Positions 6,883-60,400 of a stretch of DNA of 64,000 nucleotides are shown one piece after another (positions within the stretch are counted from its first letter, which is position 1; each line of letters starts with the position of its first letter). The notes beneath the pieces were generated by a model, which saw only the letters and a list, made by a program, of their open reading frames with translations, was not told the origin of the DNA and did not search any database. The DNA lies in the NCBI RefSeq assembly GCF_006345805.1, contig NC_042997.1:23498001-23562000 (forward strand), written 5' to 3'. Position numbers and translations under genes: made by a program. The stretch is from Octopus sinensis (taxonomy: Eukaryota).

Positions 6883-6927
<45 letters not shown>

Positions 6928-7090
6928 ATATACGACAGGCTTCTTTCAGTTTCCGTCTACCAAATCCACTCACAAGGCTTTGGTCGGCCCGAAGCTATAG
7001 TAGAAGACACTTGCCCAAGGTGCGACGCAGTGGGACTGAACCCGGAACCATGTGGTCGGTAAACAAGCTACTTACCACACAGCCACTCCT
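6661..7090 (-). mobile_element. tRNA-derived SINE (second family) with internal (TA)n
   Basis: Reverse complement of the 26177-26572 family; head gagtggctgtgtggtaagtagc...ggttccgggttcagtccc. Confidence 0.85.
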
Positions 7091-7153
7091 GCGCCTATAT
7101 AGATATATATGTAAAAAAAATCATTATTTAATAATAAGTATGCAAATATTCAT

Positions 7154-7193
<40 letters not shown>

Positions 7194-7208
7194 TAGAGGT
7201 ATATTTAT

Positions 7209-7785: not shown

Positions 7786-8034
7786 TGTATATATATATGT
7801 GTGTGTGTGTGTGTTGATTACTTTCCCTCGTTTCTTCTTGCATTGTCTACTACTTCTCTACGCCCACAATTTATTAAAAATGATGATTCAACTCCTCCTG
7901 TTTCAACTATTTTGTCTATTTGGAAGGAACACTTGAGATATGAATTATGCCACATTGACATTTTCTATAGATTGCTATTTACATCAGTGGATACCTGTTA
8001 TTCTTTATATTATATATGTATGTCTTATATATAT

Positions 8035-8773
8035 ATATTGCTGTGCGTGAGAAGACCAGGCAGGACAAGTGAGTCCAGCCCACTTATGCATGCCTTTCCC
8101 CCTTGGACACACAAAGACCTGTTGAGGCAAGCAAAGTCGATATCGAACCTCATCCGACGACAGGCACCTATGGCAACCCCCCTTGCTTGCGAAGACCTGT
8201 TGGGGCAAGTGAAATCAAAATCGAAATTGAACCAATCCTATGACTAGCACCTGGCAGATGCCAGGGTCCTGGGACTGGAGGTACGTAAAAAGCACTATCC
8301 GAATTGTGGCCGATGCCAGCGCTGCCTCGACGGGCTTCCGTGTCGGTGGCACGTGAAAAGCACCATCCGAATCGTAGCCGAAGCCAGTGCCGCCTCGACT
8401 GGCTTCCATAAAATGCACCATCCAAATTGTGGCCAATGCCAGCGCCGCCTCGACTGGCTTCCGTGTCGGTGGCACGTAAAAAGCACCATCCGAATCGTAG
8501 CTGAAGCCAGTGCCGCCTTGACTGGCTTCCATAAAATGCACCAATCCGTCCGTGGCCGATGCCAGCCTCGCCTGGCACCAGTGCAGGTGGTACGTAAAAA
8601 GCACCCACTACACTCACGGAGTGGTTGGCGTTAGGAAGGGCATCCAGCTGTAGAAACTTTGCCAGATAAGACCAGAGCTTGGTGCAGCCTTCTGGCTTCC
8701 CAGATCCCCGGTCGAACTGTCCAACCCATGCTAGCATGGAGAACGGACGTTAAACGATGATGATGATGATGAT
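8035..8773 (+). mobile_element. 5'-truncated RTE-type LINE: last ORF codons, 3' UTR hairpin array and (ATG)n tail
   Basis: Starts gctgtgcgtgagaagacc (AVREKT, compare AVLEKT in ORF 10424-11128); array at about 8277-8600. Confidence 0.88.
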
Positions 8774-9834
8774 AAGGACAACCTCAGGCCACTGAACCTT
8801 TCAGACAAGATAAAGGACTGAAATACCTGGTGCCTTGCTGCATTCAAAAAGACATGTACTCCACAGCAGAAGTGTTAAGGCCACTCCCTCTGGTGAAGAG
8901 GATTGATCTGCAAGAGTCCTGTGTCACATAAAAAGCACTAGCGCCAATGTCACATAAATGTGCTCTTGTGGTGCCATGTAAAAGCACCCAGTACACTGTA
9001 TGTGACTGGCATTAGGAAGGGCATCCAGTCATAAAAACCACGTCAAATCAGACTGGAGCCAGGTGCAGCTCTTCAAGATACCTGTTGTGGTCAAACCATC
9101 TTGTGCATCCCAGCATGGACAATGGACATTAAATGATGATGATGATATATAAATTGTATGGATATATATAACACAGAACAGATGTTAGAAAACTGATTAT
9201 AGCAGTGACTTCATCTAAGAATATCTGAAGAAGGAATATTATTCTGAAATATCATATCAGACTATGGATAACTAAATTACAACATATATAGCCCATTGTT
9301 TTTATTATAGTGCTTTGTTGTACCATTCAAAACTTTTTATTCTTTATATATATGTATGTGTATGTACATATATGTATATATGTATGTGTATGTATGTATA
9401 TGTATATATATATATATGTGTGTGTGTGTATATGTATATATATGTGTATGTATATATATATATGTGTATATATATTCCCTCTCTCTCTTTCGGAGAGGCA
9501 CTGAGCAGCTATACGCACACATACACACACGGCAGTAACTTCCACCTACCAAATTCAATCACAAAGCTCCGGTCGGCTCGGGGCTATAGTGGAAGACACC
9601 CACCCAAAGTGCCACGCAGTGGGACTGAACCTGAAACCATGTAGCTAGGAAGCAAGCTCCCTAACCACACAGCCATGCTCATGTGTATATATATATGTAT
9701 GTGTATATATATGTATGTATATATATGTGTATGTATATGTATGTGTATATATATGTATGTGTATATATGTGTATGTATATGTATATATATATATATATAC
9801 ACATATATCTGTATATATATGTGTATATATATGT

Positions 9835-11457
9835 ATCATCATCATCATCATCGTTTAACATCCGCTTTCCATGCTAGCATGGGTTGGATGACTTGACTGA
9901 GGGCTGGTGAACCAGATGGCTGCACCAGGCTCCAATCTTGATCTGGCAGAGTTTCTACAGCTGGATGCCCTTCCTAATGCCAACCACTTTGAGAGTGTAG
10001 TGGGTGCTTCTATGTGCCACCAGCACGGGGACCAGTCAGGCGGTACTGGCAACGACCTCATTCGAATCTTTTTACACATGTCACTGGCACAGGTGCCAGT
10101 AAGGCGATGCTGGTGACAATCATGCTCGAATGGTGCCTTTTACTTGCCACCGGCACAGAAGCCAGTTAGCCACTCTGGCAACGATCAAGCTCGGATGGAG
10201 CTCATAGCACCCTACTAGCACGGGGCTCGAGTGCCAGTAAGGCGATGCTGGTAATGATCACACTTGAATGGTGCCTTTTATGTGCCACTGGCACAGAAGC
10301 TGGTTAGCCACTCTGTCAACAATCACACTCGTATGGTATTCTTTGCACTCCGCTAGCACAGGATGCCAGTCATTGAATTTGATTTTAATTTCACTTGCCT
10401 TAACAGGTCTTCGCAAGCTGAGTTTAGTGTCCAAAGAAGGAAAAGGTACACATAAGTGGGCTGGTTATGCCCCTGACATAGGCCACGAGGTTATGGTCCC
10501 ATTTGGCTTGCTGGGTCTTCTCGAGCACGGCATATTTCCAAAAGTCTCGGTCACTGGTCATTTCCTTGGTGAGACCTAAAGTTCGAAGGTCATGCTTCAC
10601 CACTTCATCCCAGGTCCTCCTGGGTCTACCTCTTCCACAGGTTCCCTCAACCGCTAGGGTGTGGCACTTTTTCACACAGCTATCCTCATCCTTTCTCATC
10701 ACATGGCCATACCAGCACAGTCGTCTCTCTTGCACACCGCATCTGATGCTTCTTAGATCCAACTTTTCTCTCATGGTACTTACACTCTGTTGAGTATGCA
10801 CACTGACATTACACATCCAGTGGATCATACTGGCTTCATTCCTTGCGAGCTTACGCATGTCCTCAGCAGTCACAGCCCATGTTTCACTGCCATGTAGCAT
10901 GGCTGTTCGTACACATGCATCATACAGTCTACCTTTTACTCTGAGCAAGAGGCCCTTTGTCACCAGCAAAAGTAAGAGCTCTCTGAACTTTGCCCAAGCT
11001 ATTCTTATTCTAGCAGCTACACTTTCAGTGCACCCTACCCCGCTACTGACTTGGTCACCTAGGTAACAGAAGCTATCAACTACTTCTGGTTTTTCTCCCT
11101 GGAATGTGGCAGAAGTTCCTCTCTGCACATTTTCAGTGTTTATTGCTCCCGAGAATCTGTCAAATACAAAATCTCTCTTCCCAGTTAGCCTTCCTTTGAT
11201 ATTACTGCACCTCTTATGTGTCCATAGCTTACACTGGGTACATTTTATAGAGTTTCTACCTACGCCTCTACTACAGATCGAGCAGGGTTATCTACCTGAA
11301 GGGATTTGTGTTTTGCCTGCCTTCCTACTTATTAGGACTTTGGTTTTAGCTAGGTTGACTCTAAGGCCCTTCGATTCTAATCCTTGTTTCCACACTTGAA
11401 ACTTCTCCTCTAGTTCTGATAGTGACTGAGCAATTAGAGCAAGGTCATCAGCATAGA
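9835..11457 (-). mobile_element. 5'-truncated RTE-clade LINE: RT C-terminal half plus complete 3' UTR
   Basis: YADDLALIA...GLRVNLAKTKV (11288-11548), FCYLGD...LHGSETW...WYGHVMR...GRGRPRRTWDEVV (10424-11128), then the repeat array and (ATG)n tail. Confidence 0.92.
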
Positions 11458-11550
11458 TGTATATATGTGTATATATATATACACACACATATATATATGT
11501 ATATATATGTGTGTATATATATGTATACAACCTATCTAATGTTAACATAT

Positions 11551-12007
11551 ATCATAATCATCATCATCGTTTAACATCTGCTTTCCATGCTAGCATGGGT
11601 TGGACGATTTGACTGAGGTCTGGCAAACCAGATGGCTGCACCAGACTCCAATCTGATCTGGCAGAGTTTCTACAGTTGGATGCCCTTCCTAATGCCAACC
11701 AGCTATCTTACCAGAATTATAGCATCAGTGGTGCTTCTCCCTGGCATGAATCCAAACTGCATCTCATCTAAACTGACTCTCTCCCTAATTAGTTGGGCTA
11801 TGACCCTCTCCGTGACCTTCATTACCTGATCCAACAACTTGATACCTCTGTAATTATTTGTATCTAAAGCGTCACCTTTACCTTTGTAGCACTTGACTAT
11901 TATGCTGCTACACCAGTCATTGGGTTTGACTCAGCTGATGCTGCCAGATATTTTGGGCATCTCTGAAGTAATTCCTGATGGGCTGGGGGCTTTCCCTGTC
12001 TTCATAT
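11551..12007 (-). mobile_element. Internally deleted RTE LINE: RT N-terminal fragment fused directly to the 3' tail
   Basis: Minus-strand translation KTGKAPSPSG...[25 protein letters not shown]...QFGFMPGRSTTDAI (11702-12007) joins the tail sequence (11551-11700). Confidence 0.85.
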
Positions 12008-12630: not shown

Positions 12631-13508
12631 GCATTTGGGTATCTTATCTGATACATACCTGGTTAACTTCCATCTGTTGCCCCTCTCCATGTCTCACTTA
12701 TCTTGGCCACTCATACTTTCTAACCCTCACATTTATCTTAAATGTTCATTTTCAAAATTTTGATATGCTGATTTGTTTTGCAGATTCAGAATCTCTGGAG
12801 TCGAAAAAGTGGGTTTCGGTAGAAGAAAAAAAAAACAACAACAAAAAACAAAAGTACAGTCCATGTCCTTTACCTCCACAATGAAATGCGGCCCTTAACT
12901 ATTCTAGGAGGAAGTAACTCCAAATTAGGACTAACTCAGACCATGACAACCTTTCCAATCCATATCAGCATGGGAAGTTGATGTAAAATGATAACAATGA
13001 TAATAATATGTGTGTGTATATACATACATATAAGAGAGTGTGTGTATGTATACAAATATATATATATTAATATAAATTCTTTCTACTGTAGGCACAAGGC
13101 CTGAAATTTTGGTGGTTGGGGAGCAGTCAATTAGATCAACCTCCAGTACACAACTGGTACTTAATTTATCCAAAAAATTAAAGGCAAAGTTGACCTAGGT
13201 ATTAATATAAATTTGTGAGAGAAGGCAGTGATTGAGCAGAATCAGTGGCATGCTGGGCAAAATGCTTAGCAGCATTTCGTCTGTTTCTCTGTTCTGAGCC
13301 CAAATTTTGCCATGGTCAACTTTGCCTTTCATCCTTTTGGGGTCAGTGTAATTGACTTGCTCCTCTTCCTCAAAAACTACTGGCCTTGTGCCAAAACTTT
13401 AAACCAATATAAATATGTGTGTCTTATGTATGTTTGGAGAGATTATGTTACCATTAGCTAGGTTGAACTGTATTACTTATTACTGATATGATCTGTTACA
13501 GGGTCAGG

Positions 13509-16395: not shown

Positions 16396-16925
16396 TGCAG
16401 GAGAAGCACTTAGCAAAAAGTAAACTGCTGAACTTGGCATTTATCAACCTGGAGAAAGTCTTTGACAAGATCCCATGCTCACTCATCTAGTGGTCAATGC
16501 AGAAGCTAGAGGTAGATGAGTAGTTAGAGCTGTTCAAGCCATGTACACGGATGTTGTCAGTAAGGTGAAAGTCAGCACTGAGTACAGCAATAAATTTCAT
16601 GTGCAGGTAGGATTCACCAAGGATAGGTTCTTGGCCCCGACTTTTTTTTATCTTAGTCCTCTACACCATAACTGAGGAATTTAAGAATGGTTGGTCTTGG
16701 GAGCACCTCTATGCTGATGACCTTGTTCTTATAGCTGAATCTCTACTAGAGTTAGAGAAGAAATTTCATGTATGGATGCAAAGACTGGAATCTAAGGGCC
16801 TTAGAGTTAATTTAGCAAAGACCAAAATACTAGTAAGCTGGAAAGCAGACAATTTACTTGACCCTTCAGGGAAATGGCTCTGTACAATATATAGAAAAGA
16901 TATAGGTCGAAATTTCATAAGGAGT
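16396..16925 (+). mobile_element. Degenerate RTE reverse transcriptase fragment
   Basis: QEKHLAK...LAFINLEKVFDK...LYADDLVLIAESLLELEKKF...GLRVNLAKTKILV, with stops and frameshifts. Confidence 0.85.
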
Positions 16926-17855
16926 GCTCTGTATAGGCTGTTAAATCCCCTACCACCTCTAGTTCCCACTCTCCTTTCGAAATCTTGTGAATTCACTGAC
17001 CTACCCATCCCCTCCGATCCCTGGTCCACTCCATTATATACAATACCCTGTAACTTGGGTGTACAGGCCTTGACCCATCTTTCTCTCCTCTCTCCTCTCT
17101 CTCTGTTCCCCATCTGAGGAAGCCGTGTCTCTCTTCTAATGCAAGACATCTTTCTGTCCCTCCTCCCAATTGAGGGGTCTTGTCTTGCAAGTTACTTGAT
17201 GACCCCACTGCAGCTGATGCCTCTTAAAAAGCACCCAGTACTTCCACACAGTTTCAGTCTACCAAATTTCAATCACAAGACTATGGTTAAAAATACTTTT
17301 CCCAATGTACCACAGAGAGGTTAAACCTGAATTCATAATGTTGCAAAGTAGATTCATAACCATTAAACCATGCTTTTGATGAATTGCAGATATATTTAAC
17401 TCTCATAAAAATGGTAGAATAGAGATAAGGATGATGATGATGATGATGGTAAAAGATTATGTAAGAATGAATTTTAGTGGTAACTAATTATAGCTCAGTG
17501 GATGTTATGATCTTGGTATAGATTTGATATGTATACATTTAGATAAAGATAGGGATTTGATGAAGGTTTTATGATGTATCAAAGACAGGTTCACTGGTGA
17601 TACATGTACACACACACATTATACACATAAAATGAAAAAGAAAAAATTTAATAACTAAACATAAATGTCTCAATGAAATGTTTGTACTTTACGGTGTATC
17701 TGACTCATATAGGATATTGTTTTTTTTTATATTTTCAAATTTATTATTTTATGTAAGTTCTTTATTTTTGACAATGTCATGTATTAGTACAAAGGTGTTA
17801 TGCTGCCAAGTTATTTAGTATTTGAGACAATTTTTACTTTGAGTATATGTCAGCA

Positions 17856-17886
<31 letters not shown>

Positions 17887-18620
17887 TAAATGTTGTGTGT
17901 GCATTGTATTTCCCTGCCAGAATTTAATTAGAAGATGGGAAGTTTATAAGGAAATATCGAAAGAATTTTTGTATATGTATGTGTACAGAACTGCTGCTTT
18001 ATCTAGTTGAATATTATAATTAACTATAACCTACCTGTTTTACTGGAGTAACTATTGTTATCCTTAAACAGCCTAAGAGAAAATACAATACAAAGATTGT
18101 TGCCAACTTTTAGTGTTTATTTAGAGGATGTGACTAGGTGGAAACAAATGTTCTATACATTTTGTCTTCCTTCGGACTATTGTTTCTATAGCCAGACAAA
18201 CTAAGCTCTAGTTTGATAAACTTCCTTCTGTTGTTTTCCCTTTAATGGTAGGTTGAGTATGTTTATTGAATGGATAAAACAAGCAAGTACATAGATTGTG
18301 TTATAGTCAAGTTAATCAGCTCCAGTTCTTAGTGTCTTAGAATAAGAGAGAAATAAAAAAGAATAATAAGTTTTGATTATTGGGTAAGAAAATTGCTCCC
18401 ATACAAAACTAACACCTAATTAGCAACCCCAGATTTGTCACAGTTGGGGAATTTAGAATCAAAATTTATAAGGATGTAACTAGAAGGGAGACATTTTTAA
18501 AGAATTATTTTAAACAAATGTTATCTTTTACACAGAAAACAAGGATTGGAAAACAAATGACAGAAAGGTTTATAACAGCAAAGTAAAGCAACTCTATGCA
18601 AATTTTGATTGTAGCATTTA

Positions 18621-32288: not shown

Positions 32289-35257
32289 GTTTGTCACATT
32301 TCTTTCTTTATTTCAGTCTAGGTTATGTTAAGCAAGAACTAAATTATTCATTTGACAGACAAAGGATGAAGTCATTAAGACAGTAGTACACAATTTGAAA
32401 AGTTGAGGGTTTATGTTGTCACCAGCTTCCTTGACAGAGGTACTTAACTATCAATAACCAAAACCATGTTGTAGTAAAATAGGTGTAAAGTGCAGCCAAA
32501 TCTCACTTAAATCATCCCAAATCACCTTACTGTTTTAAGAAGCAGGACAAATTGGATAATGCAGTCCTAAATACACTGGGGAATATATCTGGATTGGTGA
32601 AGGACAAGAGGATCATGTTTCACTTAATCAGAACTGACCGAACAAAAATATAGATACTATCTGGAGGCAAATTCATTACTGTAATAGAGCACTATTTAAT
32701 TTTATTCACAAGTAATTTCACTCACTTGCAGTGTTTAGCTCAAATTCTACCATTACAACTGTAGGTAGTTTTATTTGGGGGGGGGGGGCTTAATGTGATT
32801 GCTAATTTTGTCAAAACTATAGGAATGAATTTTTGGAATTTGACAATAGATTTTAATTTAATAATGCATCATGTTAAAATATTCTCATATATAGAAAATA
32901 CAATAAAATCATTGAAAACTGAAGACTATAAACTAAAAATTTCAATTGTTTCATCTTTCTTTTAACTAAAAGATGACCTATGTTTAAGATTGTTTTTTTA
33001 AAAAAAAAAACACAAATTATTGCAAGCTTGTCCCTTAAAAAAAAAATCATTATGTTACCCTTTATTGTAATTGTTTGTATATTTAAGTAAGGTGTTGTTA
33101 ATCATGCAAGTTAGTGACTTTTCATCATCATTGTCATTTTATGTATGCTCTTCATACCTGAATGGGTTTTAACAGAGTCCAATGGGTCACAGGAACACAT
33201 CTTGGTTCAATGTTTCAGTTTTAGCATAGTTTCTGTTGCTGGATGCCCTTCCACTTTTCAGAGTTTATTGGTTGCATGAGAATCTGTCTAACCTGCACCA
33301 GCATGGAAAATGACCATGGAATTATGATGACAAACATTTTAACTTTTTCTTGATTTTTAGTTTCATCTGTATTTTCCATGTATGTAGTTATGTAGAAACG
33401 ATCAAATTAATTAAATTTTCTGTTCAATAAAAGCACATTTTATTTAATACAAGATATCTTCCAAAATTGTCAAAAATATCTTCCTTAAATGTGTTTTGTG
33501 AGTTGCAGTATAATATTATAAGATATAAAATGTTATATCTTTCAACAATTTAATGTAATTCAGAGAATATTAATTTCTAATTTTTTCCCCCCCTTTTTAT
33601 TCAGTTCTTAACATCAGTACTTCAACTCAGTTGGGATTTCCCATATCCTTGAAAGGTTTCAAACCTCCACCAACCAACCCAGAAAATGCCATTGAATATT
33701 TCCCATATTTTGGCAACACATACATTGCAACAGTTGCTAGTCTTACTGGGGGCAGTGTGATGGCTAACTTTGTGAAAACTCTGCAGGAATGGTTTTCGGA
33801 ATTTGGTAAGGGATTTCAAATTGTTATTTTTATTCATATCTTATGATAATATTTACAAATAGTAATGATATAATCAATCAAGATCAGGCATTAAACAGAT
33901 CATGTTCTAACTCACTGCTAGATCCAGTAATTATTAGAATAGGTATCAAATCATCAAAAACGGTTCAACTTCAGACCTGTATCCACTAATTATTTCAGTT
34001 CATCTTGCCACTGGATTTGGGCTTTAGTTCTGATTACAGGCCGAGTGTAGTGGCTGGTATGCAACTGCTCATTCTGTATTCAACTCCTACCTAGGCCTCC
34101 ACCACTAGATAGATATCTTTAAATATTATAGGTCTCTCATCATTTCTCCACAAACCACAGGAATTCAAAAAGCCAGTAATTAGTTGTAGATAGTTTAGTT
34201 CAATATATAAAGTCTCTCGCAAAAAAAATTGAGAATAGTATGTTCTCCAAGTAAAGAGACAGAGTTATATACAATATGGTTTAAAAAATCAATCAATAAA
34301 CATTGAATCACCATCTCTGAAACAATCTCTTTTAATCTTAATCATTCAATTAAAAGTGTAGAATTATATTGATTTCTATAGCTAAGTATCCCGATGATAT
34401 TTGTATTATCAGGATATAGCAAATTACTGTGTTTTTAAAATCATCAGCCTTGTGACTATTTTAATTAGACTTAGAATTTCTACTGGTGTTCTAACTTTAT
34501 GACCAATATGGCAGCCTCTATGCAATTTCTCAAGCTCCCAGAAATATGAGTTCAAATATCCTCAAATCACACCCTACCATTTAAAAAAAATAAACATTGG
34601 ACATTATACAAAAAGACAGGGTGATCTTGACTGGATGCTTTGCTCATAGCTCTACTTGATCAGAGATGACCTTGGCCTAAAAAAAAACAACAAACTATGA
34701 ACATATCCTTTTAGTTTCCGATGTGCCATGACTGCCATCTTGTTAGTTTACAGAGTTCCTTCCTTTCGCAGAAAGTAGGCTAAAATTATCTCATTTACTA
34801 CTCTAATTAGATGTTTTAGTTAAACTACATTTTTTTAATTTTATATATAGGTGTACGAGTAGAAGAAGAACAAGTGTGGCAAAAGCTTATAAAGCTTGCT
34901 GAAAAAGTACCAAATACTGACCTCCAGATTATACCAACTTTACAAGGGGAGCGCCATAAGCCAGATCAACGTGGCAGTGTAGCTGGACTTAACATGAATA
35001 ATATGTCTCTTGGAAAAGTGTTTCGAGCTTTGTGTAGTGGCCTTGTTCAGAATTTGCATGAGATGATGCCAAACACTTACCTAGAAGATCATGGCATTAA
35101 ACGGATCATTGCAAGTGGTTCTGGTGTGACTAAAAATCCTATTGTTCAACAAGAAGTTAAAAAGTTTTACAAGACTCCAATGGTCAATGGTGATCGCTGT
35201 GATTCTGCCTTAGGAGCTGCATTATGCGCTATTAATTCCTGTAATAGTTCACACTGA
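32113..35257 (+). CDS. SHPK: Sedoheptulokinase (FGGY carbohydrate kinase family), partial model: last three coding exons
   Basis: The joined frame gives FPVNLLP...IPKGIPVLVALGDLQ...VLNISTSTQL...YFPYFGNTYIATVASLTGG...GERHKPDQ...LSLGKVFRALCSGLVQNLHEM...GSGSG...DSALGAAL, characteristic of SHPK/CARKL. Confidence 0.92.
33605..33805 (+). CDS. SHPK: SHPK internal exon (VLNISTSTQLGFP...LQEWFSEF)
   Basis: tattcag acceptor, gtaagg donor, 201 nt phase 1-1. Confidence 0.93.
34851..35257 (+). CDS. SHPK: SHPK last coding exon (GVRVEEEQVWQKL...NSCNSSH*)
   Basis: tatag acceptor, in frame with ORF 34874-35257, TGA stop. Confidence 0.93.
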
Positions 35258-37399
35258 ATTGGGACAGGCTTTTATTATTATATAACACAATGATTTCATA
35301 AAGCAAATTAAATTGTGAAATTTATTTCAGAAATACCACAAAGTGTTCTACTGCATTTTACAGGGAGTTGTTGAATATGTAAGCAGAAAAGTAAGTTACT
35401 ATAAAGTTTCATGGTCATAATACTTACAATTTATCCAGTTAACAATTCAAAATCCTTAACAAAACTGTTTTAGATACATAAATCTATTGTATTACCAAGG
35501 TAAGAAATATGTTTTTTTAAGGCAGAAAATATAAAATAACATTAACCAAATGTAATTATAAATGAAATAATTTTTCCCCTTGCACTTTCTATTGACAATT
35601 TTTTACTGTTGAAAAATTAGTCACAGTATTGCAGTATTATTTCATTTGTCCTCACTACATTGTGGAATATTGAGTTTAGTATTTTCTATGAAAGATCATA
35701 ACTTTATATTTTATGGGACTCATTCTGAACAAATGTTATAAAATGAATTTAGGGTTGGTATTTCAAAACAAATCATATCTTTTGAATTTTCATTTGTAGA
35801 ATAGTGTATCTTATCACACCAAATTTATTTTTCTCATTTGAAATGTCTTTTTAAAATGACTTATAAAATCCTCTTTAGATTATTCAAAAAATTCTTATTT
35901 ACATTCTTTCATTATGTATCAGTTACATTACTTTCATTGTATTACAATTTTTATGGCCAATATTCACGACTAGATGATGATAACCAAAGATTCTTGTAAA
36001 CAACCATGATCATTATCATTATTGTGTATTGATCCAAATAGCTATTCTTTCATGTGATTCAATTTTAGCACAAACTTTCTTATCCAATTTATATTTTCAA
36101 AGTTGTTCTGTCATGCAAAACATTCTTTATCGCAGTGACCCTTTTGGATTGATACTAAGATTTTTTTTCATTAGTTCTCTTCAATACCTACATCTCTTTC
36201 CAAACCAGAGATGAAATATAATTTGACTTGTGGATTAGTGGTTTCTATTAAAAAAATAGTTTCTGGAGAGTGTAATTTTGAGGCAGGGCTGGTAGAAGTT
36301 TTTACTTTAAGAACATGGTGCAAGTATATCAAGTGGATTTAGACAGAACATAGTCTGCAAATTCAAATTGAAAGAATCAGTATCCTACACACAGAAACAA
36401 TGGAATACTACACAAACATTTGCAAATGATACACCAAGTCTAATTTGTCACCGAACAACGCGAGAGATCCCCTACCAGATAATGTTTTAAAAGGAAAAGT
36501 ATCTGTGAAAGGAAACACAATGACATTAGTAACATTGATTTTAATATTAAACATTATAATAGAAGTTTTGACTGACTGTTTCTTCAGATGTAATCTGAAG
36601 CTTATAGTTTGAACTATATCTCATATAACATTCGCTACATTTAGAGATTGTATCTTTAGCCTGTATACATGGCTGAGGATTTAAATAAGGATGGATTTAT
36701 GCATGTGGTCTGTTCCACTATTTCATTACAGCAGGTTTCAGAGAGCATTGCCACTATCAGTAACGGTGAACTGAATTGAAATGTCATCCAAGACACACTT
36801 CTTACAAGGCAGATAATGAAAGAACACATAGACAAAAGAACTGTGTAAAATGTACAGATATATTTTCATTTTATATAACAGTATGTTTATTTAACATTTT
36901 TTTTTTTTAATTCTACAAAAGACCAAGATTCAAAGTGAATGATAGACTAAAGAAGTAATTACAATGGGCGAATAGACAGAAACATTAGTAATATGTGGAT
37001 GTTGTTCAGACAGAAATTGAGATCAAGACATGTGAAATTTATTTAAAATGTTACTTCTCCAATCTAATGTTTTTTATCTTAATAATTTAGTTGACAATCA
37101 AATACAAATGGGGGTCTTTTTTTTCTTTTTCTGGTATAAACAAATTTAATTTGAGAGGGAAAAATATAATGAACATATGTAAAATCATAAAAATAAATTA
37201 TAATCTCTCAATGATATGAGTCATATCATTTATATAGCTTTCAAGTTTTAATGTTCATGCTGTAAATTCAGTTTGCCACTGTGTTAAAACAAAAGAGTAA
37301 AACATTAAATATGAAAGCATAATTAATATGAATATTATACGTACATCAATAATACATTAACATTTGTATGTTCTTACATGTCACACAAGTCCTGATGCT

Positions 37400-37435
37400 T
37401 CAAAAGATGGTAGCCTGAGAAGGTAAATTTATTAT
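37400..37435 (-). CDS. DNA2: DNA2 last coding exon ([11 protein letters not shown])
   Basis: Follows the U12 branch site TTCTTTAAC and an AC acceptor; resembles the vertebrate C-terminal IIDLPS as recalled; TGA stop at 37400-37402. Confidence 0.85.
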   Translation of the reverse strand: MINLPSQATIF

Positions 37436-40400
37436 GTAATTCTGGTTAAAGAAAATATCTGAAAACAATTTTCTCATAAAATGTTCATCTTTTTCTTTTT
37501 GTCAAAATAATATATTTTTAATGTTATTTTTCGAAATAATATAAATATTAAAAGTAGAAAAAATAAATGGATTTTTAAAATATATTTTGTTGAATCAATA
37601 CCAAAAAGAAAGGAAGAAACTCTTAATTTCAATTTTTTTTTTAATGTTTGCAGTTAGCTTGATTTGTATCTATGTTAGCTGCAGCAGCCTCTACATGTAA
37701 ATGTATTCTATACAGATATGTATGCAGACGTGTAGAGGTTTGTTTATAATCTTATTTACTGCTGATGGCTAAATATTTCTTGTTCCATTCTGTTCATTCA
37801 AACTCAAGAATATTCGATACAACTAAATTGAAAAACAACTGTTGCTGTATATGTTATTTTTAGACAAGGATGCTTTTTGTCTCCCACTCTCTGTACCCTA
37901 TTTTCTTTTTGTCATGTTTGAAGTACTGACTCTTTACTTTCAATATCCAGTATTTAACTTTCACCCCTTCCCCCATTCACCTTTATACTCTAGTCTTCCA
38001 ACCTTCTCACTTCCCTTGAGTGACAAACATTTTTTTCTCTTTTCTTCACTCATACAGTATGCATGGCTTGAAATTCTCCCCCATTATCTCTGATTGGACA
38101 ATCACATGCAGGAAAGATAATCAATCAAAACTTACTAGTGACCCACAAATCTGAACAGACTAAATAACTACTACTTTCATGAGAGTAGTAGTTATCATGT
38201 TCAGCTTGGCAAACTAATATGATCTAACTACAGGCAAAGAGTATGAAACTCTTGACATTCTCATTTATATAGATCAGCACTTTAACTAGAGGACTACTCA
38301 TTTTAAAAACTACTTACATGAAATTGGTTGACATTATAAATAGTGTTTCATAGCAGATGTATAGTTTTCATTTTTGTGCCCTAAGTTTATACTTGAAGTA
38401 TGAGCAAAATGAGTAATTGGTTTTATATAAGAGCACTAAACAAATAGATAGTTCTGAATTTGAATGTCGCAATTCTTTTTAACTTTGTTGGCATTAGATG
38501 AATTGATCTAAAAGAATCATCATCATCATCATCGTTTAACGTCCGTTTTCCATGCTAGCATGGGTTGGACGGTTCAACTGCAGTTTGGGAAACCAGAAGG
38601 CTGCGCCAGGCCCAGTCTGATCTGGCAGTGTTTCTACAGCTGGATGCCCTTCCTAACACCAACCACTCCGTGAGTGTAGTGGGTGCTTTTTATGTGCCAT
38701 CTGCACAGGTGCCAGACGAGGCTGGCAAACAGCCACAATTGGATGGTGCTTTTTATGTGCCACCGGCACGGAGGCCAGTCGGGGCGGTGCTGGCAACGGC
38801 CATGTTCAGATGGTTCTCTTACGTGCCACCGGCACTGGTATCTCAGCTACAATTTCCATTGATGTTGAAAGATTTCGATTTCGATATACAATGTTATTCA
38901 ATTAAAAGTTTTAATTATTTTTTTCTAGCACAATATCCTATCCTCTCAGAAATTCTTTTCTTAGGCTAGCTAATCTGATAAAGAATGTGTGTGTGTGTGG
39001 TGGGGTGCTTTTACATCAATGTGTGCATATGTGTGAGAAAAATGAACAAAAATATACAAAGGATATAAGTTGTCTTTGGGACAATAGCGTCATTAAGTCT
39101 GCAAGTGGTTTGAATATTTCAAGGGTTTCAACATTTCCAATGAATATAAGCTTACATTTTGCTCGAGTCATGGCAACATTTAATCGTCGGATATCTTTCA
39201 GGATTCCACCAGCCTAAAAACATAAAACAGTCTCAAATCATAATTTAACATGTTAAATATAAACCATATAAGCATTAACTAATCACTCATCTCTCCATTA
39301 TTTGTGCTACATGTATAGCAACAGATGGTACAAGACCTAGCCATATTCAACCATTCCTATCATCACCCTTTACACTCACCCTCTTCTGTTTGTCACAAGG
39401 TCAATGTATAAGGGTTTACATTGAACCTGTTCATACACAATACATTCTACTATCACCTTTGCTATATTGCTAGTCATCAGCTATTGCTTACTGTCCCCCT
39501 GACTAAATGTCACTGTCAATTATCATTTATCTTTACCATTATCCACCTCTATTATTACCCATCTCTCTCTCTCACCTTAAACACAGTTTCTACTATCATA
39601 CTCTTATATCTTCATCCACCAATTCTGTTTATGCCATCTCTCTCTCTTCCTTATTCACATCTTGGTCACACTGCTTTGGGTGTATATATATGTCAGAGTA
39701 GTGAGAATTCTACTTTTATGTTATAGAAGTTAAGCTTCTTGTGCTGGTGCCATGGTAATGCAATCAATACAGTTTGTAAAGTGATTAGTGATGGGAAGGG
39801 TATCCAGACATAGAAACCAAATCAAAATATAAAGGCAAGATGTGATACTCCAACCTGTTGGCGTGGGTATGGGAGTAATCTGGATAAAAACTGACAACCC
39901 AACCAAACAGTACTGAAAGCGGACATGAAGTAATGATATGATATGAATGCAACTTCAAACATTTGTGGCTCAAGATTTTCATTTATCTACATCTAAATCA
40001 AGAATATATCGTGTTACAGTAGTTTTGCTACATAAATATTTAAATTTATATATTGTAATATGCTTGTCTAAATGCTTTATATAGCTTTCCGTCAATTTCT
40101 TTGAAAGTGTGAAAATACATTGTATGAATAAGTATGGGAATAAAAAATATATAAGAAAAAGTGTAAGGATATACTGTAAGTGCAAGAATATTTTCTACTT
40201 TAAATTTGTACAATTTCCAGTTTTGTGTGTCAAACATTAAAATTACAGTAAATATTGCAGATTCTAAAAAACGTCAAGATTATTCAATATTAAGATAATT
40301 TTTCTGTTACATGAATTCTTACTTACTTTGCAAGATTTTAAATTTTCTTTGGAACTGCTTCTCACAAATGTTACTATGATTATATCTTTATCGCGGCCTT

Positions 40401-48400: not shown

Positions 48401-51400
48401 TCCCAAAAGGACAAAAGGCAAAGTCAGTCCAAGCAGGATTTAACCCTTTCATTACTGTATTTATTTTGAGATACTCTGTGTTTCTCTTAATTATTTTAAA
48501 TATAACAAAGAATTTAGTAAAATAACTCAGTTGTCATTCAGCTAGTGTAAGGAATATTAATTATGACTAAGCTTTGGTGGGAGATTTTAATTCAAAACTT
48601 ATGAATACAAGACATTTGTACTACAGAGCCAGAGCCGGGTTGGTAACAAAAGGGTTAAACAGCTGTAAATAACTATGCATAGAATTGATTCTGCCACATA
48701 TTCAAACCATATCACAAGCAATGTATCTCTGCTGAACTGCACATCATTCCCATACTACATTACAATATTTCAAGAGTGTCAATCCTCAGTATTTTATCTA
48801 TAAAATTATTTCACTCACTACTGACATCATCATTATTAGTCCTCATTCCTACAACACTAAATCCTCATTGTTAACGATAGGTTTTTATTCTTTACCAAGT
48901 TAGTATAGAAGGCAGAAACAAATATGATGTTAAAATTTATGTAAGAGATGTACAGAACAATTACAGATTTAGATCTGTTTGAATTAGATTAAATACACCA
49001 AGGTCCACAACTCTGAGATTTAATACGCACAAATAATGAAATCATGAATGGAACACTGCCTCTTTGCTTCGTCTGTTAAAGCTATTATGGTAGCAAGATT
49101 AAGAACAGGACATCAATAACCCACAGAACATGGTTCTGGATTGTGGTAGATTGTGTTAAACTATGAAAAAGCAATGTAAATGCAAAAGCAGGAAAATATT
49201 CATTTTCTTTGTCAAGAAATCTAAAACATCTCTTCAAAAAAAGAAAAAGGAAATTTTTTATAGTATCCCAAAATTTGGCATGCTCCTCTACACTGACTTT
49301 CCACTTATTACACTCTCCTATCAACATTTCTAACATTATCAAAAGCAGCATCTGCTTACATAATGCCACAGCCTCAAGCAAGGCCAATATAAAACATTTT
49401 TCAGCTTTCAGTGTCAATTCAAGAGCACTCACAAGCACACACACAACACATACTTTTCACCTGCCAAAATAACCAGCTGAATTACTTACTACTCTTTATT
49501 GCAAATGAGAAGTAGTTACAAATCAAAAAACATGAACATATATATATATATATTGTATAATTTTGAAAAATTATCTATTTACTTGGCCTGATCGCTTTGG
49601 ACAATAGGAGGAAGTTGTTTTGAATCTCCAACTAAAATGAATTTTTTGGCAGCAAATAAAGGACCAAGGCACATGGGCAGCATCACTTGAGAGGATTCAT
49701 CAATAATACAGACATCAAACTGACGTTGACATTGAGAAAAGAGTGTATGGGACATGCCCACACATGTAGTGGCAACAACATTCTGGGGAAGAAAATAAAG
49801 GAAAATAGTTTACCAAAACATTGTGCAAGAGCTCAGAAAATAAAATATTAGGCTTCAATTAAAAATATCAAGTTAAATTTCTGTTTTCATTCATTCATTC
49901 ATCCATCATCATCATCATCGTTTAACGTCCGCTTTCCATGCTAGCATGAGTTGGACGGTTCAACTGGGGTCTGAGAAGCCAGAAGGCTGCACCAGGCCCA
50001 GTCTGATCTGGCAGTGTTTCTACAGCTGGATGCCCTTCCTAACGCCAACCACTCCGTGAGTGTAGTGGGTGCTTTTTACGTGCCAGACGAGGCTAGCAAA
50101 CGGCCACGATCGGATGGTGCTTTTTACGTGCCACCGCCACGGAGACCAGGCGAGGCTGGCAACGGCCACAACATTTCTCTAATCAAGTTAAAATCTAACA
50201 GACACTGTGTTATAAACTGATTTTAAATTTTAAACTCTCTCCAGAGAAAGATTTTTGTCTACAAATTGTTTGGATAATCTCAAATGACCAAAGTTTTTCA
50301 ACTCCAAGGTATTTTCTCTTCAGCCATGTTGATGATGTTCATAATTAGTGTCCCTACATCAGTGCTTTTCAAACTTTTTGCTGGAGCGGAACCCCAAGGA
50401 AACATTCCACTGGCTCGAGGAACCCCTGTGCAATAATTTAATAGTCTTATGCACACATATCTGCACAGGAGACTTAAAAATTACTGCCGAATTTAGCAGT
50501 TTTGTAACTTCTTGTGGAACCCCTGCACTGTACTGGCGGAACCCTGGTTGAAAACCACTGCATTACATATATTCTATCTTATTTGTTTCAGTCATTGGAC
50601 TGCAGCCAAGCTGAGGTACCACCTTGAAGGGTTTAGATGAATAAATTGACCCCAGTAAATAATTTTTTAAATTAAAATCTGGCACTTATTTTGTAGGTCT
50701 CTTTTGCCAAACTGTTAAGTTGTGGGGACATAAATGATCTAACTCTGGTTCTCAAGTGGTGGTGAGAGACAAACATACACTGCAACATATTTGGTCTGCT
50801 GCCCTACCATTTATGCCATTCAGTCACTATCTTCAAAAACCCAAATACTGAGTATGTAATCAAATAGATTGTGTTTCCAGGCAAGTCACACACAAGAGCT
50901 AAGAGAAGAGAGCGTTAATCTCTTGGCTGAAGGAGTTATGATGGAATAAAAACTGGTAATTCATTAACCAAGACACCTCCACTTGAGCATTCTGAGTATT
51001 TTCTCTTGGTAAATACTTAGACAAATATCTATATTCCTACCATGGATTCATATACAGTTTTCAATTCCTGCACAGATTTCGCATTCTTAGTCAGTTCATC
51101 TGCTGAATAAGGGTAGATATCAGGGTGGATACGATCCTTCCGGCCCATACGTAAAAACTGAATTTTTTCCTAAAAAGGACAAAAAAGTAATTCAAAGATT
51201 AGAACGTGTATATTGAAAAAACACAAGGAAAGTATATTTCAGAAACTGGTTATAGGAATTAACAAAGAAATAGAAGTTTGTCAACATTTAGATAATATTT
51301 TTGTTCATTAGTGTAACATCCATTTTCCATGTTAGCATTGGTTAGAGGTGCTTTTTCCATTGACAACCTTTATGTTTTTCCAAGGAATGGGATTTATATT

Positions 51401-54400
51401 CCACTGGTCTTCAAAACTGCAGAGTGATTGGTCATAATCTCAATGAAGCATGTAAACATCATCAACTATTTCACTTGAGCAAAACCATGAACTGTCAGCA
51501 TTCACTCACCTCACACACACATCACATATACGACAGGCTTCCAACAGTTTTCATCTCCCAAATTTACTCATCAAGTGTCAAGTTAGGGCTATAGCAGAAG
51601 ACATTTGCCTTAGGTACAGCACAATGGGATTTTGGTGAGTGAACAGATGTGAGTCCCTTTAGTTGTGTCATGGACATGACTACTTCTGTAGTGCTGGTGC
51701 CATGAAAAGAATACACCTAGTACACTCTATAAGTGTTAAGTTAAGAGGAACCTTTAAACTTGTCAAGAACATGACACCTCCAAGGATGGCACCATGAAAA
51801 AAGCACCCAGTACACTGCATAAAGTGGTTGGCATTAGAAAGGACATCCAGCCATCAAAGCCAAACCAAAAATGAAACTCACAAGCAACAGGCAGTCCTTC
51901 AATCCATCTAGAGAATATGTACTGAGTGAAAACAAAAAGTGGACGCAAAAGTGATAACAATACAGACACACACCATACATGATGTACGATTAATATTCAT
52001 TCAGAGCGAAGTGCTGATTCACTCCACATTTACACAGTCCAGTAACATACTGCTTAAATGAATGCACAAGGTGCAATCCTCAACTGAGGTGTGAATTTGT
52101 AATTGGAGTACAAATAGTGTGTCAAACCAATAAATATTAGCTGCAATATCTGACATGAGATTTCTAAACAGATGCTGTTTTGTCTTTACAGTGAAATACT
52201 GTGGTGGTAAACATATTACAACTCCAAAAGGAATGTTAATAATCAAATAATCCAGTAATTACAGATTAATTAGTTGAAGTAAATAGCTAGCATTGTGATA
52301 TTTCATCTACTTGGTTGCTTGGCTTCATACCTTCACTCTCTTCCACATATACAGTAAGTAATTTAGCCAAAATTTCATATCCCAAAAATACCTAACTAAA
52401 TTTTCATACACACACACACTCAAAGAGAATGTGCAAAACTGGAAAGAATTTGTGGTGAACATGCTCCACTGGGCATGTACAGGGGTTGGACAAAATAATG
52501 GAAACATCTGGCAGTGTTTCATCCAGCTGTAGAAACACTGCCAGATCTGACTGGCCTGGTGTAGCCTTCGGGCTTGCCAGACCCCAGTTGAACCGTCCAA
52601 CCCATGCTAGCATGGAAAGCGGACGTTAAACGATGATGATGATCTTAAAATTTCCAACAAATTTATTTTAATATGGGGTAGGACTGCCTTTGGCAATAAT
52701 TACAGCTTGAATTCTATGAGGTATGGACACGTACAAAGTTTGAATTGTTTCCAAAGGAATTTTTGCCCATTCTTCAGCTAAAACAATCTCCATTTCTTGT
52801 AGTGATGATGGGAGGATATTGACTCCTTACTTGTTATTTGTAAAATGCACCATAAAGATGTTTAACTTCACTTGAATGTTCCTCATGCCATTCAGTAACA
52901 ACTTTAGCTGTGTGTATTGGTGCATTATCATCCTGATTGATTGCGTTTCCCTCCAGAAACAGTTCTGCAATCATAGGATGAATTTGATCAGATAAATGCT
53001 TAATGCCATGAATGGAAACCATTGGGCTGGCAGATTTCCAAGATATAACCCCCCACCCCACCCCCACGCATCATCACAGTTGAAGAAAGCAGTCTGGGTC
53101 AAATGCTTCTTTTGGTTGTCTCCACACATATACTTGGCCGGTGGTCAGAGATAATGTAAAGGATGACTCGTCCGAGAAAATAACATTCTTCCACTGCTCT
53201 AGGGACCAATTCTGTAGGTTTTTACTCCACTCTAAACGTTTTGCAATGTTTGTTTTTGGAAGTAGTGGTTTCCTGATAGCAGCACTCTCGTAAAATACAG
53301 CTTCGTGCTTAATGACTCGAGGTAGTCACTAAGCTCTGCAGTAATTTTGGGAGCTGTATGTTTGTGATTCTTTCTAACAATTTGCATAAGAATCCAATAG
53401 TCCCTATCTGAAAGTTTTGGTTTTCTTCTGGAGTTTTGTTTCAACGAGGAGGTTTTTTCCCTCTTTCTCAAAGGCTGTCATTACTTTCAAGACAGTACTT
53501 CTTGATACACCAAACATTTCAGCTGTTTTCATTATGCTAATGCCTGTCATACAAGCACCAACAATTTGACCTCTTTGAAAATGCAATAGATCTGTCATTT
53601 TAATGAATTTTAATGACCTTTTTCTGATGATATCTGAAAAGAAACAGCAATTATAGCAAAACTAATAATAAATCAAAAAACATAAAAAGAAACAAGCTTT
53701 TGACAGTTTTATAAATATTTCCAAATTACGATGCTATGTGTTTGCATTATTTTGTCCAACCCCTGTATGTTAGAATGAATGAATAGTGGATGACAAATAA
53801 GCCAAGAAAAAGAACAGGTACAAGTGGAATCAGATGAAGTATACAAGAGAAAGGATTATGCTGAAACAGACATGTGATGCAGCATATGAAGGGAGAGCCA
53901 AGTAAAGAACTGCAAGAAGATTCAAGTGTGGAAGAGGAAGACTGATGAGAGATATGTAAAGATATGGTGAAGAGTAACTTCAATATGCTGAACCTTATGA
54001 AGAAAATGACAAACGACTGCAACAACTGTGTGGGGAAACAACAAATAAAAGTTAGTCAAGAATATAGAGGACGGGGGAGGAGGAGGAGAAAGGAGAAAAA
54101 TATCATCATCATCATCATTTCATGTCCGTTGTCCATGCTGGCATGGGTTAGATGATTTGACCAAAGCTGGCAAGTTGGAAGGCTGCACAGACTCCAGTTT
54201 GATTTAGCATAATTTCTATGGCTGGATGCCCTTCTTAACACCAACCATTCCAAGAGTGTAATGGATGCTTTTATGTGCCACCAGCACAGATGCCTTTTGC
54301 TTGGCAGCAGTATCTGCAATGACTGTGGTTTTACCTGGCTTGATGGGTCTTTTTCTCAAGCATAATGCCAAACATCTCAGTCATTTGTCATTGTCTCCAT

Positions 54401-57400: not shown

Positions 57401-60400
57401 CTCATTATATATATTTCTGACTTGACTAATATATAATAAATACAACAAAACACTGCATGTCAGTTACTACAGATTAAAATGTTTTACTAACAAAACAAGA
57501 TTAAGTTATAAGACCAAATGACAATTGGTAAATAATGCTTCCTCAATACAAACAAGAACGTGGCATAGCAGCAAAACATTCCACTGAAGATTAACTGCCA
57601 GTTATCTTCATCATCATCATTGTTTAACGTCCGTTTTCCATGCTAGCATGGGTTGGACGGTTCAACTGGGGTCTGGGAAGCCAGGCCCAGTCTGATCTGG
57701 CAGTGTTTCTACAGCTGGATGCCCTTCCTAACGCCAACCACTTTGTGAGTGTAGTGGGTGCTTTTTATGTGCCACCTGCACAGGTGCCAGACGAGGCTGG
57801 CAACGGCCACAATAGGATGGTGCATTTTACGTGCTGCCGGCACGGAGGCCATACTCAACAACCAACTGTGATGATAAGCAAGTTTTCAGTCAACATACTC
57901 AGGCACTGCCATTGAGAAATGTAGAGATCTAAATCCCACTTGGCATCTTTGACTTCAACAAGGTGTTTGACAGCATACACAAACCTTCATATAGTAATGT
58001 AGCATTCTTAAAGTTGTTATTGTGGAAATCAAACATGCCAACAGAAAATATTGTGTCAAGATTGAAAACAAGTACTAGAAGCTGATTCAAATGCTGACAG
58101 AAGTACACTGAAGATGCTTTCTATCACTTGTATTTGCTCTGGCCTATGATTGGGTGCTGAAGAAAGCTACCCAAAGAAAGGACATACAACTTGCTATCCT
58201 AGAAAAAATACAAAATGAAAAGGTAAAATAAGCCTAAATAAGCTTCAATTTATTAAAAAAAAAAAAATAAATAAATGAACGGGTGCTTTCATTTTTAGTC
58301 AAGTTTTAGAAAGTGATGATTTAAAATCTTACCTTTCTGAACAGTGCTTTTTGCTAATGTTGAATGCACTCTAGGTTTTTCATGGTCAATTATCAATTGC
58401 CTTAATCTTGCACTGAAAATAAGACATGTTACTGATTAAATTATTTACTCAAGACTTACATTTTTACACAATACCATGAAAAATATATAAAGTCTATATA
58501 TATTATGAAAATAGATGTTGTGTACAGACATGTATGTGTTTAGCAATAGAAACAGTAAGAGTAAAAAACAAAAAAAAAGGAGGGTGATGGCAGAACATAT
58601 ACTGCAGAAAGAGAGACTGCTGAGAAAGATATATAAATTGTATTATGTAAACTACAGACAAGAGAAAAACTTTGATATTTTGGCATCTTTGTTACTTATT
58701 GTTTTAATGTTATACTATACTAGCAGCATAGCCCGGCGTTGCCCGGGTATGTAAGAGCCCCTAGTAGGCAACGACTAATCCCAATCTAGTCCTTTCCCTC
58801 TAGGGAACGAAGGCGCATGTGTAGGTTGCAATGTCTTCTCTTCACTCCCAAATAACTATCAAACAGCTATCGATAATTCAACCCAACCAATTCCTACCAG
58901 GAAGAAATTACATTCGAGACTTTACCCTCAACACCGATCGAGTTGCGTCCCCTAGACAGTCTGTGGTTTGTGTTTAATACACAAATCGGTTTGCTATGTG
59001 TGCCACATATGATTTAATTGACCGATTTTTTACAGTAATAAAGTATCCTATTGGAATAAAAAGGGCCATATAGCTCCTTGGAGCAGACATGATGCTCGCT
59101 GTAAATTTTTTTTTAAATTCCTGCCAATTTGTGAAAGATATTGTCGAAAATATAACATCTTGAATTTGAACGCGATTTCCCAAAATGGCATGATTTTATC
59201 GATTTTTTCTGATGGTAAGGTATTGCATGGAAAACTAACGTCAGAATTAATTTTCTTAGGGTAACATTAAGCTTCACCACGAGTTTGGTGAAAATCGATT
59301 GCAAGTTGCAAAAACTACAACAGAAAATGTGTTGCATATAAAATGCTTAGATTCTCGACCCCATGTCGAATTTATTGATTGTTTTCAGAACTGGGGGAAC
59401 TTTTCAAAATTTTCGCTGCGTTAGTTTTGAATTATGACATTGGGCTATGTGTGTGTCAAGTTTCATCAGAATCAGTTGAAAGTCATGGTCAGGGTGAGGG
59501 TACAACCTGACAGACACACAGACAGACAAACTGCCGTTTATATATAGAGAGATTATTAGGTGTTACAGTAAACAAATCTGACATCAGTATTCTACAAAAT
59601 ATCAATGTTAACAGTAATGAACAAATATATTAACAATGCCAAAAATAGCTACTGCAGTTTTACATTATATCAAACATCAATACAAAAAATAACCTTTTGT
59701 GACCTGTATCAGTGGATGAGAAAACTTTAATAAACAAAACTTCTTTACCTGTGAGCAGTATCTGCCATTAAAGTTATCAGATTATTATAGCACGTGCCCC
59801 AATTCTCCCAGTCAGAACATTTGTCAACTTTGAAAATTTCTGTATTAATATTGAGATGGTCATCAAAGCTTCTGGAATGAAAATGAAAGAAATTATGTCA
59901 TTGTGTAAATAAAAAGGATTCTGAAAATTTTAGTTAGTTTTTCTTTGTTCTGTTCTTTTGCGGTCTGGGTCAATCAGATCATATATATATATGTACTAGC
60001 AGTATCGCCCGGCATTGCTCGGGTTTGTAAAGGAAATAACTATATAAGCATTTTTAGAGAGTTACTTCCCTTATAGATGCCAATTTGGGCTTTCTTAGCC
60101 ATTTCTGTTTTGGTGTCTTCAAGCCATGAAGTCGTTGTTCTAAAAGAACGCTGGTCTCCTTGACAACGCTTTACGACGTTGATTTCCTTACACTCCCTTC
60201 CCCACAGCTTCACGAGGGAGGGAAGAAGTAACACAGGTGCAGGTGTGACCATGGACGCCAACTCCGCCGCCATCGACACACGAAAAAATATGCATTAAAA
60301 TGGAATAAAAAATGATGTTAAATTATTTTTTAAATCGTAGACTCATCGTAGACGCGCGCTAATACCCAGACGGGCTCGATATGAATCACGACTATAAGAT

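Follow-up and report, generated by a model that had tools for sequence, protein, structure and literature searches.

One of the described systems closest to the element analyzed here is the minor intron of the human DNA2 gene, which figures in listings of minor-intron genes. In this gene a Seckel-syndrome variant has been described, +6delC, which lies in the 5' splice site of the minor intron (PMC7507305) and bears the designation c.3114+6delC (PMC6773220). Since 3114/3 = 1038, position c.3114 is the last base of codon 1038, and, with a human protein of 1060 amino acids (aa) (PMC8069077), 22 residues therefore follow the intron. In a pan-eukaryotic survey, minor-intron conservation was compared across a set of species with Octopus sinensis among them, and molluscs were noted to be relatively minor-intron-rich (PMC10639083). 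Here we describe the last intron of DNA2 in a 64,000-nt stretch of the O. sinensis genome (assembly GCF_006345805.1, contig NC_042997.1, positions 23,498,001 to 23,562,000 of the forward strand), hereafter the window, in which this gene lies on the minus strand. We estimate at roughly 93% the probability that the segment 39066-37436 is the last intron of octopus DNA2 and belongs to the AT-AC subtype of U12-type introns. On sequence comparison it is orthologous to the single catalogued human DNA2 minor intron, at SEKL/IIDLPS (a slash marks the splice junction throughout), and we infer that it is removed in octopus by the minor spliceosome.

By the similarity of its C-terminal superfamily 1 (SF1) helicase region and by orthology, the host gene is the DNA2 nuclease-helicase, in agreement with the original prediction made for this stretch of DNA. 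A 60-aa query, representing the spliced C-terminus and spanning the junction, matched mouse DNA2 (PDB 5EAN, 5EAW and 5EAX, with E = 1.4e-11 for 5EAN) in an alignment that crosses the junction without gaps (...llsqrqL/IINLPSQ in octopus vs. ...hLNAEQL/ILDLPSR in mouse); the next-best families, Sen1 (2e-3) and Upf1, were all at 1e-3 or worse. When 1.84 billion representative proteins were searched index-free with a 130-residue query, the top representative match was a 1695-aa protein with 96% identity over 130 of the 130 query residues, reaching the last residue of the subject, and a cluster look-up identified this protein as the RefSeq DNA2 of Octopus bimaculoides (XP_014783794.1). The full product of O. 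bimaculoides DNA2 contains PF08696 Dna2, AAA_11 and AAA_12 domains. Its residues from about 1152 onward map to the window, whose minus strand carries the upstream helicase exons in their proper order. The gene begins outside the window (N-terminal exons were placed in part only), and the part that would encode the N-terminal RecB-like nuclease domain with its Fe-S cluster is located beyond the window or at its edge. In alignments, the penultimate coding exon corresponds to residues 993-1041 of mouse DNA2 and to residues 1680-1728 of O. bimaculoides RefSeq DNA2. A long N-terminal extension of octopus DNA2, of about 710 residues, comes from one large exon that is likewise outside the window (positions 5908-8043 of the O. 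bimaculoides locus L010, GCA_001194135.2 CM046601.1).

The original prediction placed an AT-AC intron directly after ...SQRQL, and every element of it was recovered on the minus strand exactly where it had been located (Table 1). From intron position +1, the donor ATATCCTTT conforms to the pattern /[AG]TATCCTT(T) and agrees with the U12-type AT-AC donor consensus at all nine of its positions, and the terminal dinucleotides are AT at 39066-39065 and AC at 37437-37436. The branch-site element TTCTTTAAC agrees at eight of nine positions, with a single C-to-T change relative to TTCCTTAAC; viewed as a TCCTTAAC-like site with the branch adenosine about 8-15 nt upstream of the intron end, it reads TCTTTAAC (37452-37445), with one mismatch, at which a G-U wobble pair with the U12 small nuclear RNA (snRNA) may still form. 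The presumed branch adenosine is the second A of TTCTTTAAC, at 37446, and lies 10 nt before the final intron base, as had been anticipated. Both elements are thus recognizable as U12 consensus elements, as claimed. The last exon had been given as 36 nt long, a figure that holds for its coding part (11 codons, or 33 nt, plus the stop codon) and not for the whole exon, which runs on into the 3' untranslated region (UTR). This coding part is homologous to ILDLPSR in mouse, IIDLPSG in whale and IINLPET in the ark clam Tegillarca. Each of the nine further DNA2 exon borders inspected in the window is of the GT...AG type, the last junction being the only one examined at which homology stops without a GT.

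The U12 assignment rests on consensus matching together with background frequencies in the window, and here a distinction has to be made between the motif and its placement. Taken alone, the donor motif is uninformative, because the 8-mer ATATCCTT occurs at chance frequency (5 copies in the window vs. 3.6 expected, with at least 5 copies in 28 of 100 shuffles). Neither ATATCCTT nor RTATCCTTT is over-represented in the window, and the motif was dropped as stand-alone evidence. The four other copies of ATATCCTT are decoys: one is found in the neighbouring kinase gene, inside a coding exon, and the remaining three are intronic or unassigned; the copy at 40165 is kept in O. bimaculoides (L010 41815), within an ordinary GT-AG intron of DNA2. 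The significance lies in placement. Within the window, the donor ATATCCTT has a background frequency of 3.9e-5 per position, an AC with a TCCTTAAC-like site before it (at most one mismatch, branch adenosine 8-15 nt upstream) one of 2.0e-4 per position, and the peptide pattern I[ILV]xLP one of 6.3e-5 per codon position. The donor, the 3' end and the peptide are all three found exactly at the positions demanded by the ungapped protein alignment, and because they fit these homology-required positions, the joint probability of coincidence, calculated from the three frequencies at fixed positions, is far below 1e-6. A further ATATCCTT was observed outside the window, in the 5' part of O. bimaculoides DNA2 (L010 15852, in the context ...cttctactt/ATATCCTTGCGG), the nearest mapped exons being 13083-13154 and 16907-17011.

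In the minor splicing model, U11 acts at the 5' splice site and U12 at the branch site, and the 3' splice site is determined mainly by its distance from the branch point. Applied to the octopus intron, U11 snRNA would pair with ATATCCTTT at the 5' splice site and U12 snRNA with TTCTTTAAC, leaving the branch adenosine 37446 bulged, and the AC about 10 nt downstream of this adenosine would be picked as the 3' splice site by distance. A nearer CAG (37443-37441), 4 nt from the branch adenosine, would be too close. The exon ending in ...SQRQL would then be joined in phase 0 to the 11-residue last exon.

Comparison with mammals, for which the gray whale served as the genomic reference, places the octopus junction at the position of the human minor intron. 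The penultimate whale exon ends in ...LNSEKL and is followed by ATATCCTTTTTG, the intron (637 nt) ending in TCTTCCTTAATTTATTTTAC/ATC ATT GAT CTT CCA, so that the junction reads SEKL/ATATCCTTT...TTCCTTAAT..AC/IIDLPS; the last whale exon comprises 22 residues, equal to the human count after codon 1038. A partial orangutan model ends in ...SEKLISFFFCIW (SEKL-ISF), which is ATATCCTTT read through. Since the whale junction, the orangutan read-through and the human codon arithmetic agree, the statement in the original prediction that the last human intron lies at SEKL/IIDLPS, in a gene listed among minor-intron genes, was correct, and the two human reports agree with it (PMC7507305; PMC6773220). The octopus intron and its mammalian counterpart are alike in gene, codon boundary (ungapped), phase 0 and the role of last coding intron, as well as in the ATATCCTTT donor, in a branch site of the TTCCTTAA type about 10-12 nt away from the terminal AC, and in the shortness of the last coding segment, which starts with I-I/L-x-L-P-S. 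They differ in the branch site, which in octopus is TCTTTAAC, in intron length (1631 nt in octopus, with a lineage-specific short interspersed nuclear element (SINE), vs. 637 nt in whale) and in the last exon (11 residues in octopus vs. 22 in mammals). The proteins also differ in length, with 1739 aa and a much longer N-terminus in O. bimaculoides vs. 1060 aa in human.

This position is shared well beyond octopus and mammals. In a 12-species alignment the junction falls at column 49/50, the exceptions being the annelid Owenia (after residue 48) and the amphipod Hyalella, which is intron-less, and all orthologous introns examined are in phase 0 at this common column, with the Owenia exon one residue shorter (Table 1). 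The mollusc comparisons comprised O. bimaculoides, a cuttlefish-like ENA contig (L001), Argopecten, Dreissena, Lymnaea and Tegillarca; the C-terminus encoded by L001 is near-identical to that of the cuttlefish Acanthosepion pharaonis. The same 8-9-mer donor stands at the junction in whale, cichlid, scallop, zebra mussel, L001 and O. bimaculoides, and the branch sites of the orthologues are TTCCTTAAC, TTCCTAAAC or TTCCTTAAT at equal spacing. In Lymnaea and Owenia the signals are GTATCCTT...TTTCCTTAAC..CAG, that is, U12-type GT-AG with terminal dinucleotides unlike those of octopus, whereas in Tegillarca the entire signal set is different (GTATGT...polypyrimidine-CAG). All three nevertheless share intron position and phase with octopus, and their last exons (IITVPLQE, VVQLTR and IINLPETAGQ, respectively) are homologous. 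Support for positional orthology thus comes from the human minor intron and from whale, cichlid, scallop, zebra mussel, Lymnaea and Owenia, each with an AT-AC or GTATCCTT intron. For the scallop, in vivo use of the junction is suggested by P0002, a Logan-assembled open reading frame (ORF) on a 1366-nt contig, which shares its spliced C-terminus with the scallop gene; as the last intron of that gene takes up 1077 nt by itself, this contig would represent a spliced transcript.

U12 introns are known to switch subtype, to be converted and to be lost. Judged by their splice signals, Lymnaea, Owenia and Tegillarca illustrate subtype switching and U12-to-U2 conversion, neither of which the octopus intron has undergone. 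Being orthologous to the human minor intron, the latter dates back at least to the last ancestor that protostomes and deuterostomes had in common; the simplest reading is that an AT-AC U12-type intron was present in the bilaterian ancestor and has been retained in octopus, with switching, conversion and loss elsewhere. The predicted retention of an ancient U12 intron in a mollusc is thus borne out by U12-type introns at this junction in other molluscs, an annelid and vertebrates.

Table 1. Features of the octopus DNA2 3' region in the window (window coordinates) and introns found at the orthologous junction in other animals (coordinates of the respective loci)
Feature	Position	Strand	Length	5' end	3' end	Remarks
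DNA2 last intron	37436..39066	-	1631 nt	AT	AC	probably U12-type
5' splice site ATATCCTTT	39058..39066	-				9/9 vs. U12-type AT-AC donor consensus; right after L codon (CTT)
Branch-site element TTCTTTAAC	37445..37453	-				8/9; one C-to-T vs. TTCCTTAAC
Terminal AC, 3' splice site	37436..37437	-				read from the sequence
DNA2 penultimate coding exon	39067..39213	-	147 nt			49 codons, AGGILKD...LLSQRQL; tttttag/ acceptor; phase 0 end
DNA2 last exon, coding part	37400..37435	-				ATA ATA AAT TTA CCT TCT CAG GCT ACC ATC TTT TGA
Presumed 3' UTR start	37247..37399	-				to first ATTAAA hexamer (37252-37247), by hexamer scan
SINE-like repeat in DNA2 last intron	38523..38883	-	361 bp			(GAT)n tail; absent in O. 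bimaculoides orthologue
Other SINE-like copies (examples)	2670-2993, 49904-50168, 57604-57851, 3711-3941, 8463-8773					
Other ATATCCTT matches	31361, 33643, 34703	+				none at exon ends
Other ATATCCTT match	40165-40172	-				not at an exon end
O. bimaculoides (L010)			1296 nt	ATATCCTTTGTA	TTTTCTTTAACCAGAATTAC	AT-AC U12
ENA contig, cuttlefish-like (L001)			395 nt	ATATCCTTTTTT	TTTTCCTTAACTGGCCTGAC	AT-AC U12
Scallop Argopecten (L005)			1077 nt	ATATCCTTTTTA	TTTTCCTTAACCCTTTATAC	AT-AC U12
Zebra mussel Dreissena (L004)			1271 nt	ATATCCTTTGTT	TCCTTAACGCTAAAAC	AT-AC U12
Cichlid (L003)			179 nt	ATATCCTTTAAA	TTTTCCTAAACTCTTACTTCAC	AT-AC U12
Gray whale (L007)			637 nt	ATATCCTTTTTG	TCTTCCTTAATTTATTTTAC	AT-AC U12
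Pond snail Lymnaea (L006)	17738-18175		438 nt	GTATCCTTAAAT	TTTCCTTAACATGTCATCAG	GT-AG U12
Annelid Owenia (L008)	9830-10377		548 nt	GTATCCTTTACT	TTTCCTTAACAGAGTGTCAG	GT-AG U12
Ark clam Tegillarca granosa (L002)	11089-11600		512 nt	GTATGTGC	TTATCTCTTTACAG	U2-type GT-AG
Amphipod Hyalella (L009)	~8920					no intron; ...GEEQIIKMD...

A side-by-side comparison with O. bimaculoides revealed identities of 96.6% in the penultimate exon, 95.0% in the intron and 100% in the last coding segment, as well as 97.9% over the first 200 nt after the stop codon. Between the two species there is no difference in the donor context ATATCCTTTGTATATTTTTGTT, the 3' end TTTTCTTTAACCAGAATTAC or the last coding segment, and the penultimate exon differs by five substitutions, two of them amino-acid-changing. 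The O. bimaculoides intron is without the SINE-like repeat, an insertion that accounts for the difference in intron length. The window contains at least 20 copies of this kind of repeat (about 320-360 bp), with identities of 68-91%, and the absence of the DNA2 copy from the O. bimaculoides orthologue points to a recent lineage- or haplotype-specific insertion. Given these differences, the window derives from a closely related octopus or a divergent haplotype and not from the O. bimaculoides reference assembly. The RefSeq proteins of O. bimaculoides, XP_014783794.1 (1695 aa) and XP_052822289.1 (1739 aa), already join QRQL to the 11-residue last exon, the coding sequence (CDS) range of the 1739-aa model stopping at the stop codon of this exon.

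Several observations weigh against the assignment of the octopus intron to the U12 class and its removal by the minor spliceosome. The branch site TCTTTAAC has a mismatch to TCCTTAAC. The window and O. bimaculoides are too similar (95% throughout the intron) for any inference on selective constraint of the splice signals, and footprinting between them was ruled out as proof of selective signal conservation. Neither snRNA genes nor an intron-hosted small nucleolar RNA gave an Rfam match in the whole window, and a tRNA scan of the whole window was equally without a match; as no minor-spliceosome snRNA gene is matched in the window, the presence of the machinery rests on the literature. Use of the junction in this octopus is, moreover, deduced from sequence. 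Finally, a GT and an AG are available in frame close to the two AT-AC termini, providing a weak U2-type alternative.

Such an alternative would have the major spliceosome use a cryptic GT-AG pair, from the donor TTT/GTATAT (9 nt into the intron, 39057) to the acceptor tttaaccag/AATTAC (37441, 6 nt upstream of the AC), with the insertion of ISFNY before IINLPS. Beyond the presence of both sites in frame, it may draw on Dreissena, in which a GT is also found at +10 (ATATCCTTTGTT), and on the human 5' splice-site mutation in this intron, which activates cryptic sites (PMC7507305). We nevertheless consider it very improbable, as a five-residue insertion at the junction is seen in no orthologue of the 12-species alignment, TTT/GTATAT is weaker than all other DNA2 donors examined, and the GT at +10 is missing in L001, scallop, cichlid and whale. 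In addition, the CAG lies just 4 nt from the branch adenosine of a near-consensus U12 site, and AT-AC is the junction adopted in the sister species' RefSeq model.

Minor introns are often inefficiently spliced, and the octopus intron might instead be mostly retained, so that a read-through C-terminus would be the main product and the 11-residue end would be minor or unused. A read-through ORF is indeed present (39016-39171, 51 aa), and many public models of other species end by read-through. There is, however, little room for this explanation, given that the 36-nt coding segment is 100% identical in both octopuses and homologous to vertebrate and bivalve C-termini, that the U12 3' signals before the last exon are intact, that the read-through tails across species share only the splice-site-encoded ISF, and that a 10-nt deletion in O. 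bimaculoides would shift the frame of the read-through ORF. Some intron retention in octopus DNA2 may still occur. Lastly, splicing of this AT-AC intron by the major (U2-type) spliceosome (rare U2-type AT-AC introns do exist), or a mere chance resemblance of the motifs (for which the chance frequency of ATATCCTT alone in the window would speak), can be given next to no credence in view of a complete U12 donor combined with a correctly spaced branch site, a junction without a polypyrimidine tract ending in AG, the recurrence of the two elements at the junction in at least eight other taxa (with the U12-specific GTATCCTT in two) and the minute joint chance probability given above.

The original prediction expected standard GT-AG gene finders to mis-annotate the C-terminus of DNA2. 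This expectation fails for the O. bimaculoides RefSeq models, in which the junction is already used, and holds for models of cuttlefish, zebra mussel, Takifugu, Ptychodera, Diadema antillarum and others. Among the public DNA2 models, eight named ones read through into a spurious tail that starts with ISF, the translation of ATATCCTTT, exactly at the junction: Acanthosepion pharaonis (CAE1265881.1), Dreissena polymorpha, Takifugu flavidus, Ptychodera flava (XP_070570774.1), Diadema antillarum (XP_071490385.1), Callorhinchus (elephant shark), Eptatretus (hagfish) and an orangutan isoform (model identifiers P0132, P0109, P0042, P0137, P0147, P0155, P0210 and P0048). ISF tails at the junction occur in models from a hemichordate, a sea urchin, elephant shark, hagfish and several teleosts, with VSF in one cluster. 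The Tegillarca and Lymnaea protein models are truncated at the junction, and the original UniProt models of O. bimaculoides DNA2 are fragments of 73 aa and 740 aa; the Diadema setosum model is correctly spliced (...NNL/ISYLP). The practical value of the present analysis is in annotation quality, as a check for [AG]TATCCTT at the end of homology would mend the ISF-tailed models.

Some other features of the window were noted in passing. The neighbouring gene is convergent with DNA2, and its last exon (34852-35257, plus strand, with a GT-AG-type acceptor, tatatag/) encodes the C-terminal domain of an FGGY carbohydrate kinase (Pfam FGGY_C, E = 1.9e-9), possibly of a sedoheptulokinase-like protein; its stop codon is about 2.1 kb from that of DNA2. 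Within a DNA2 intron, ORF fragments at 52668-53598 (minus strand) match HTH_23 and HTH_28 (Pfam, E about 1e-6) and contain a "DDNAPIHTA" motif; by these features they look like a decayed transposase of the Tc1/mariner type. Two ORFs at 4408-5007 and 10424-11128 (minus strand; 199 and 234 aa) have in common an "...ETW..." region typical of the C-terminal part of a retroelement ORF2-like protein. Neither the 199-aa nor the 234-aa ORF had a Pfam match above threshold, and both are probably decayed retrotransposon fragments.

Overall, the U12 intron of octopus DNA2 is real, ancient and conserved, but not new, since the conservation of U12 introns between molluscs and vertebrates is known, the human intron is catalogued, and the O. 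bimaculoides RefSeq models splice the junction. Knowledge of minor splicing and of DNA2 is left unchanged by this finding, which provides a clean example of a minor intron kept at one codon boundary since before the protostome/deuterostome split. The gene concerned is an essential gene of replication and repair, and a human splice-site mutation in this intron has been reported to be the probable cause of Seckel-syndrome primordial dwarfism. A more speculative idea, which we regard as possible though rather doubtful, is that the last DNA2 intron presents every evolutionary state across lophotrochozoans and arthropods, and that the octopus copy, with its weakened branch site and the flanking in-frame cryptic GT and AG, could be an early step of conversion. 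If this were true, the last DNA2 intron would constitute a compact natural series on minor-to-major intron conversion within bivalves.

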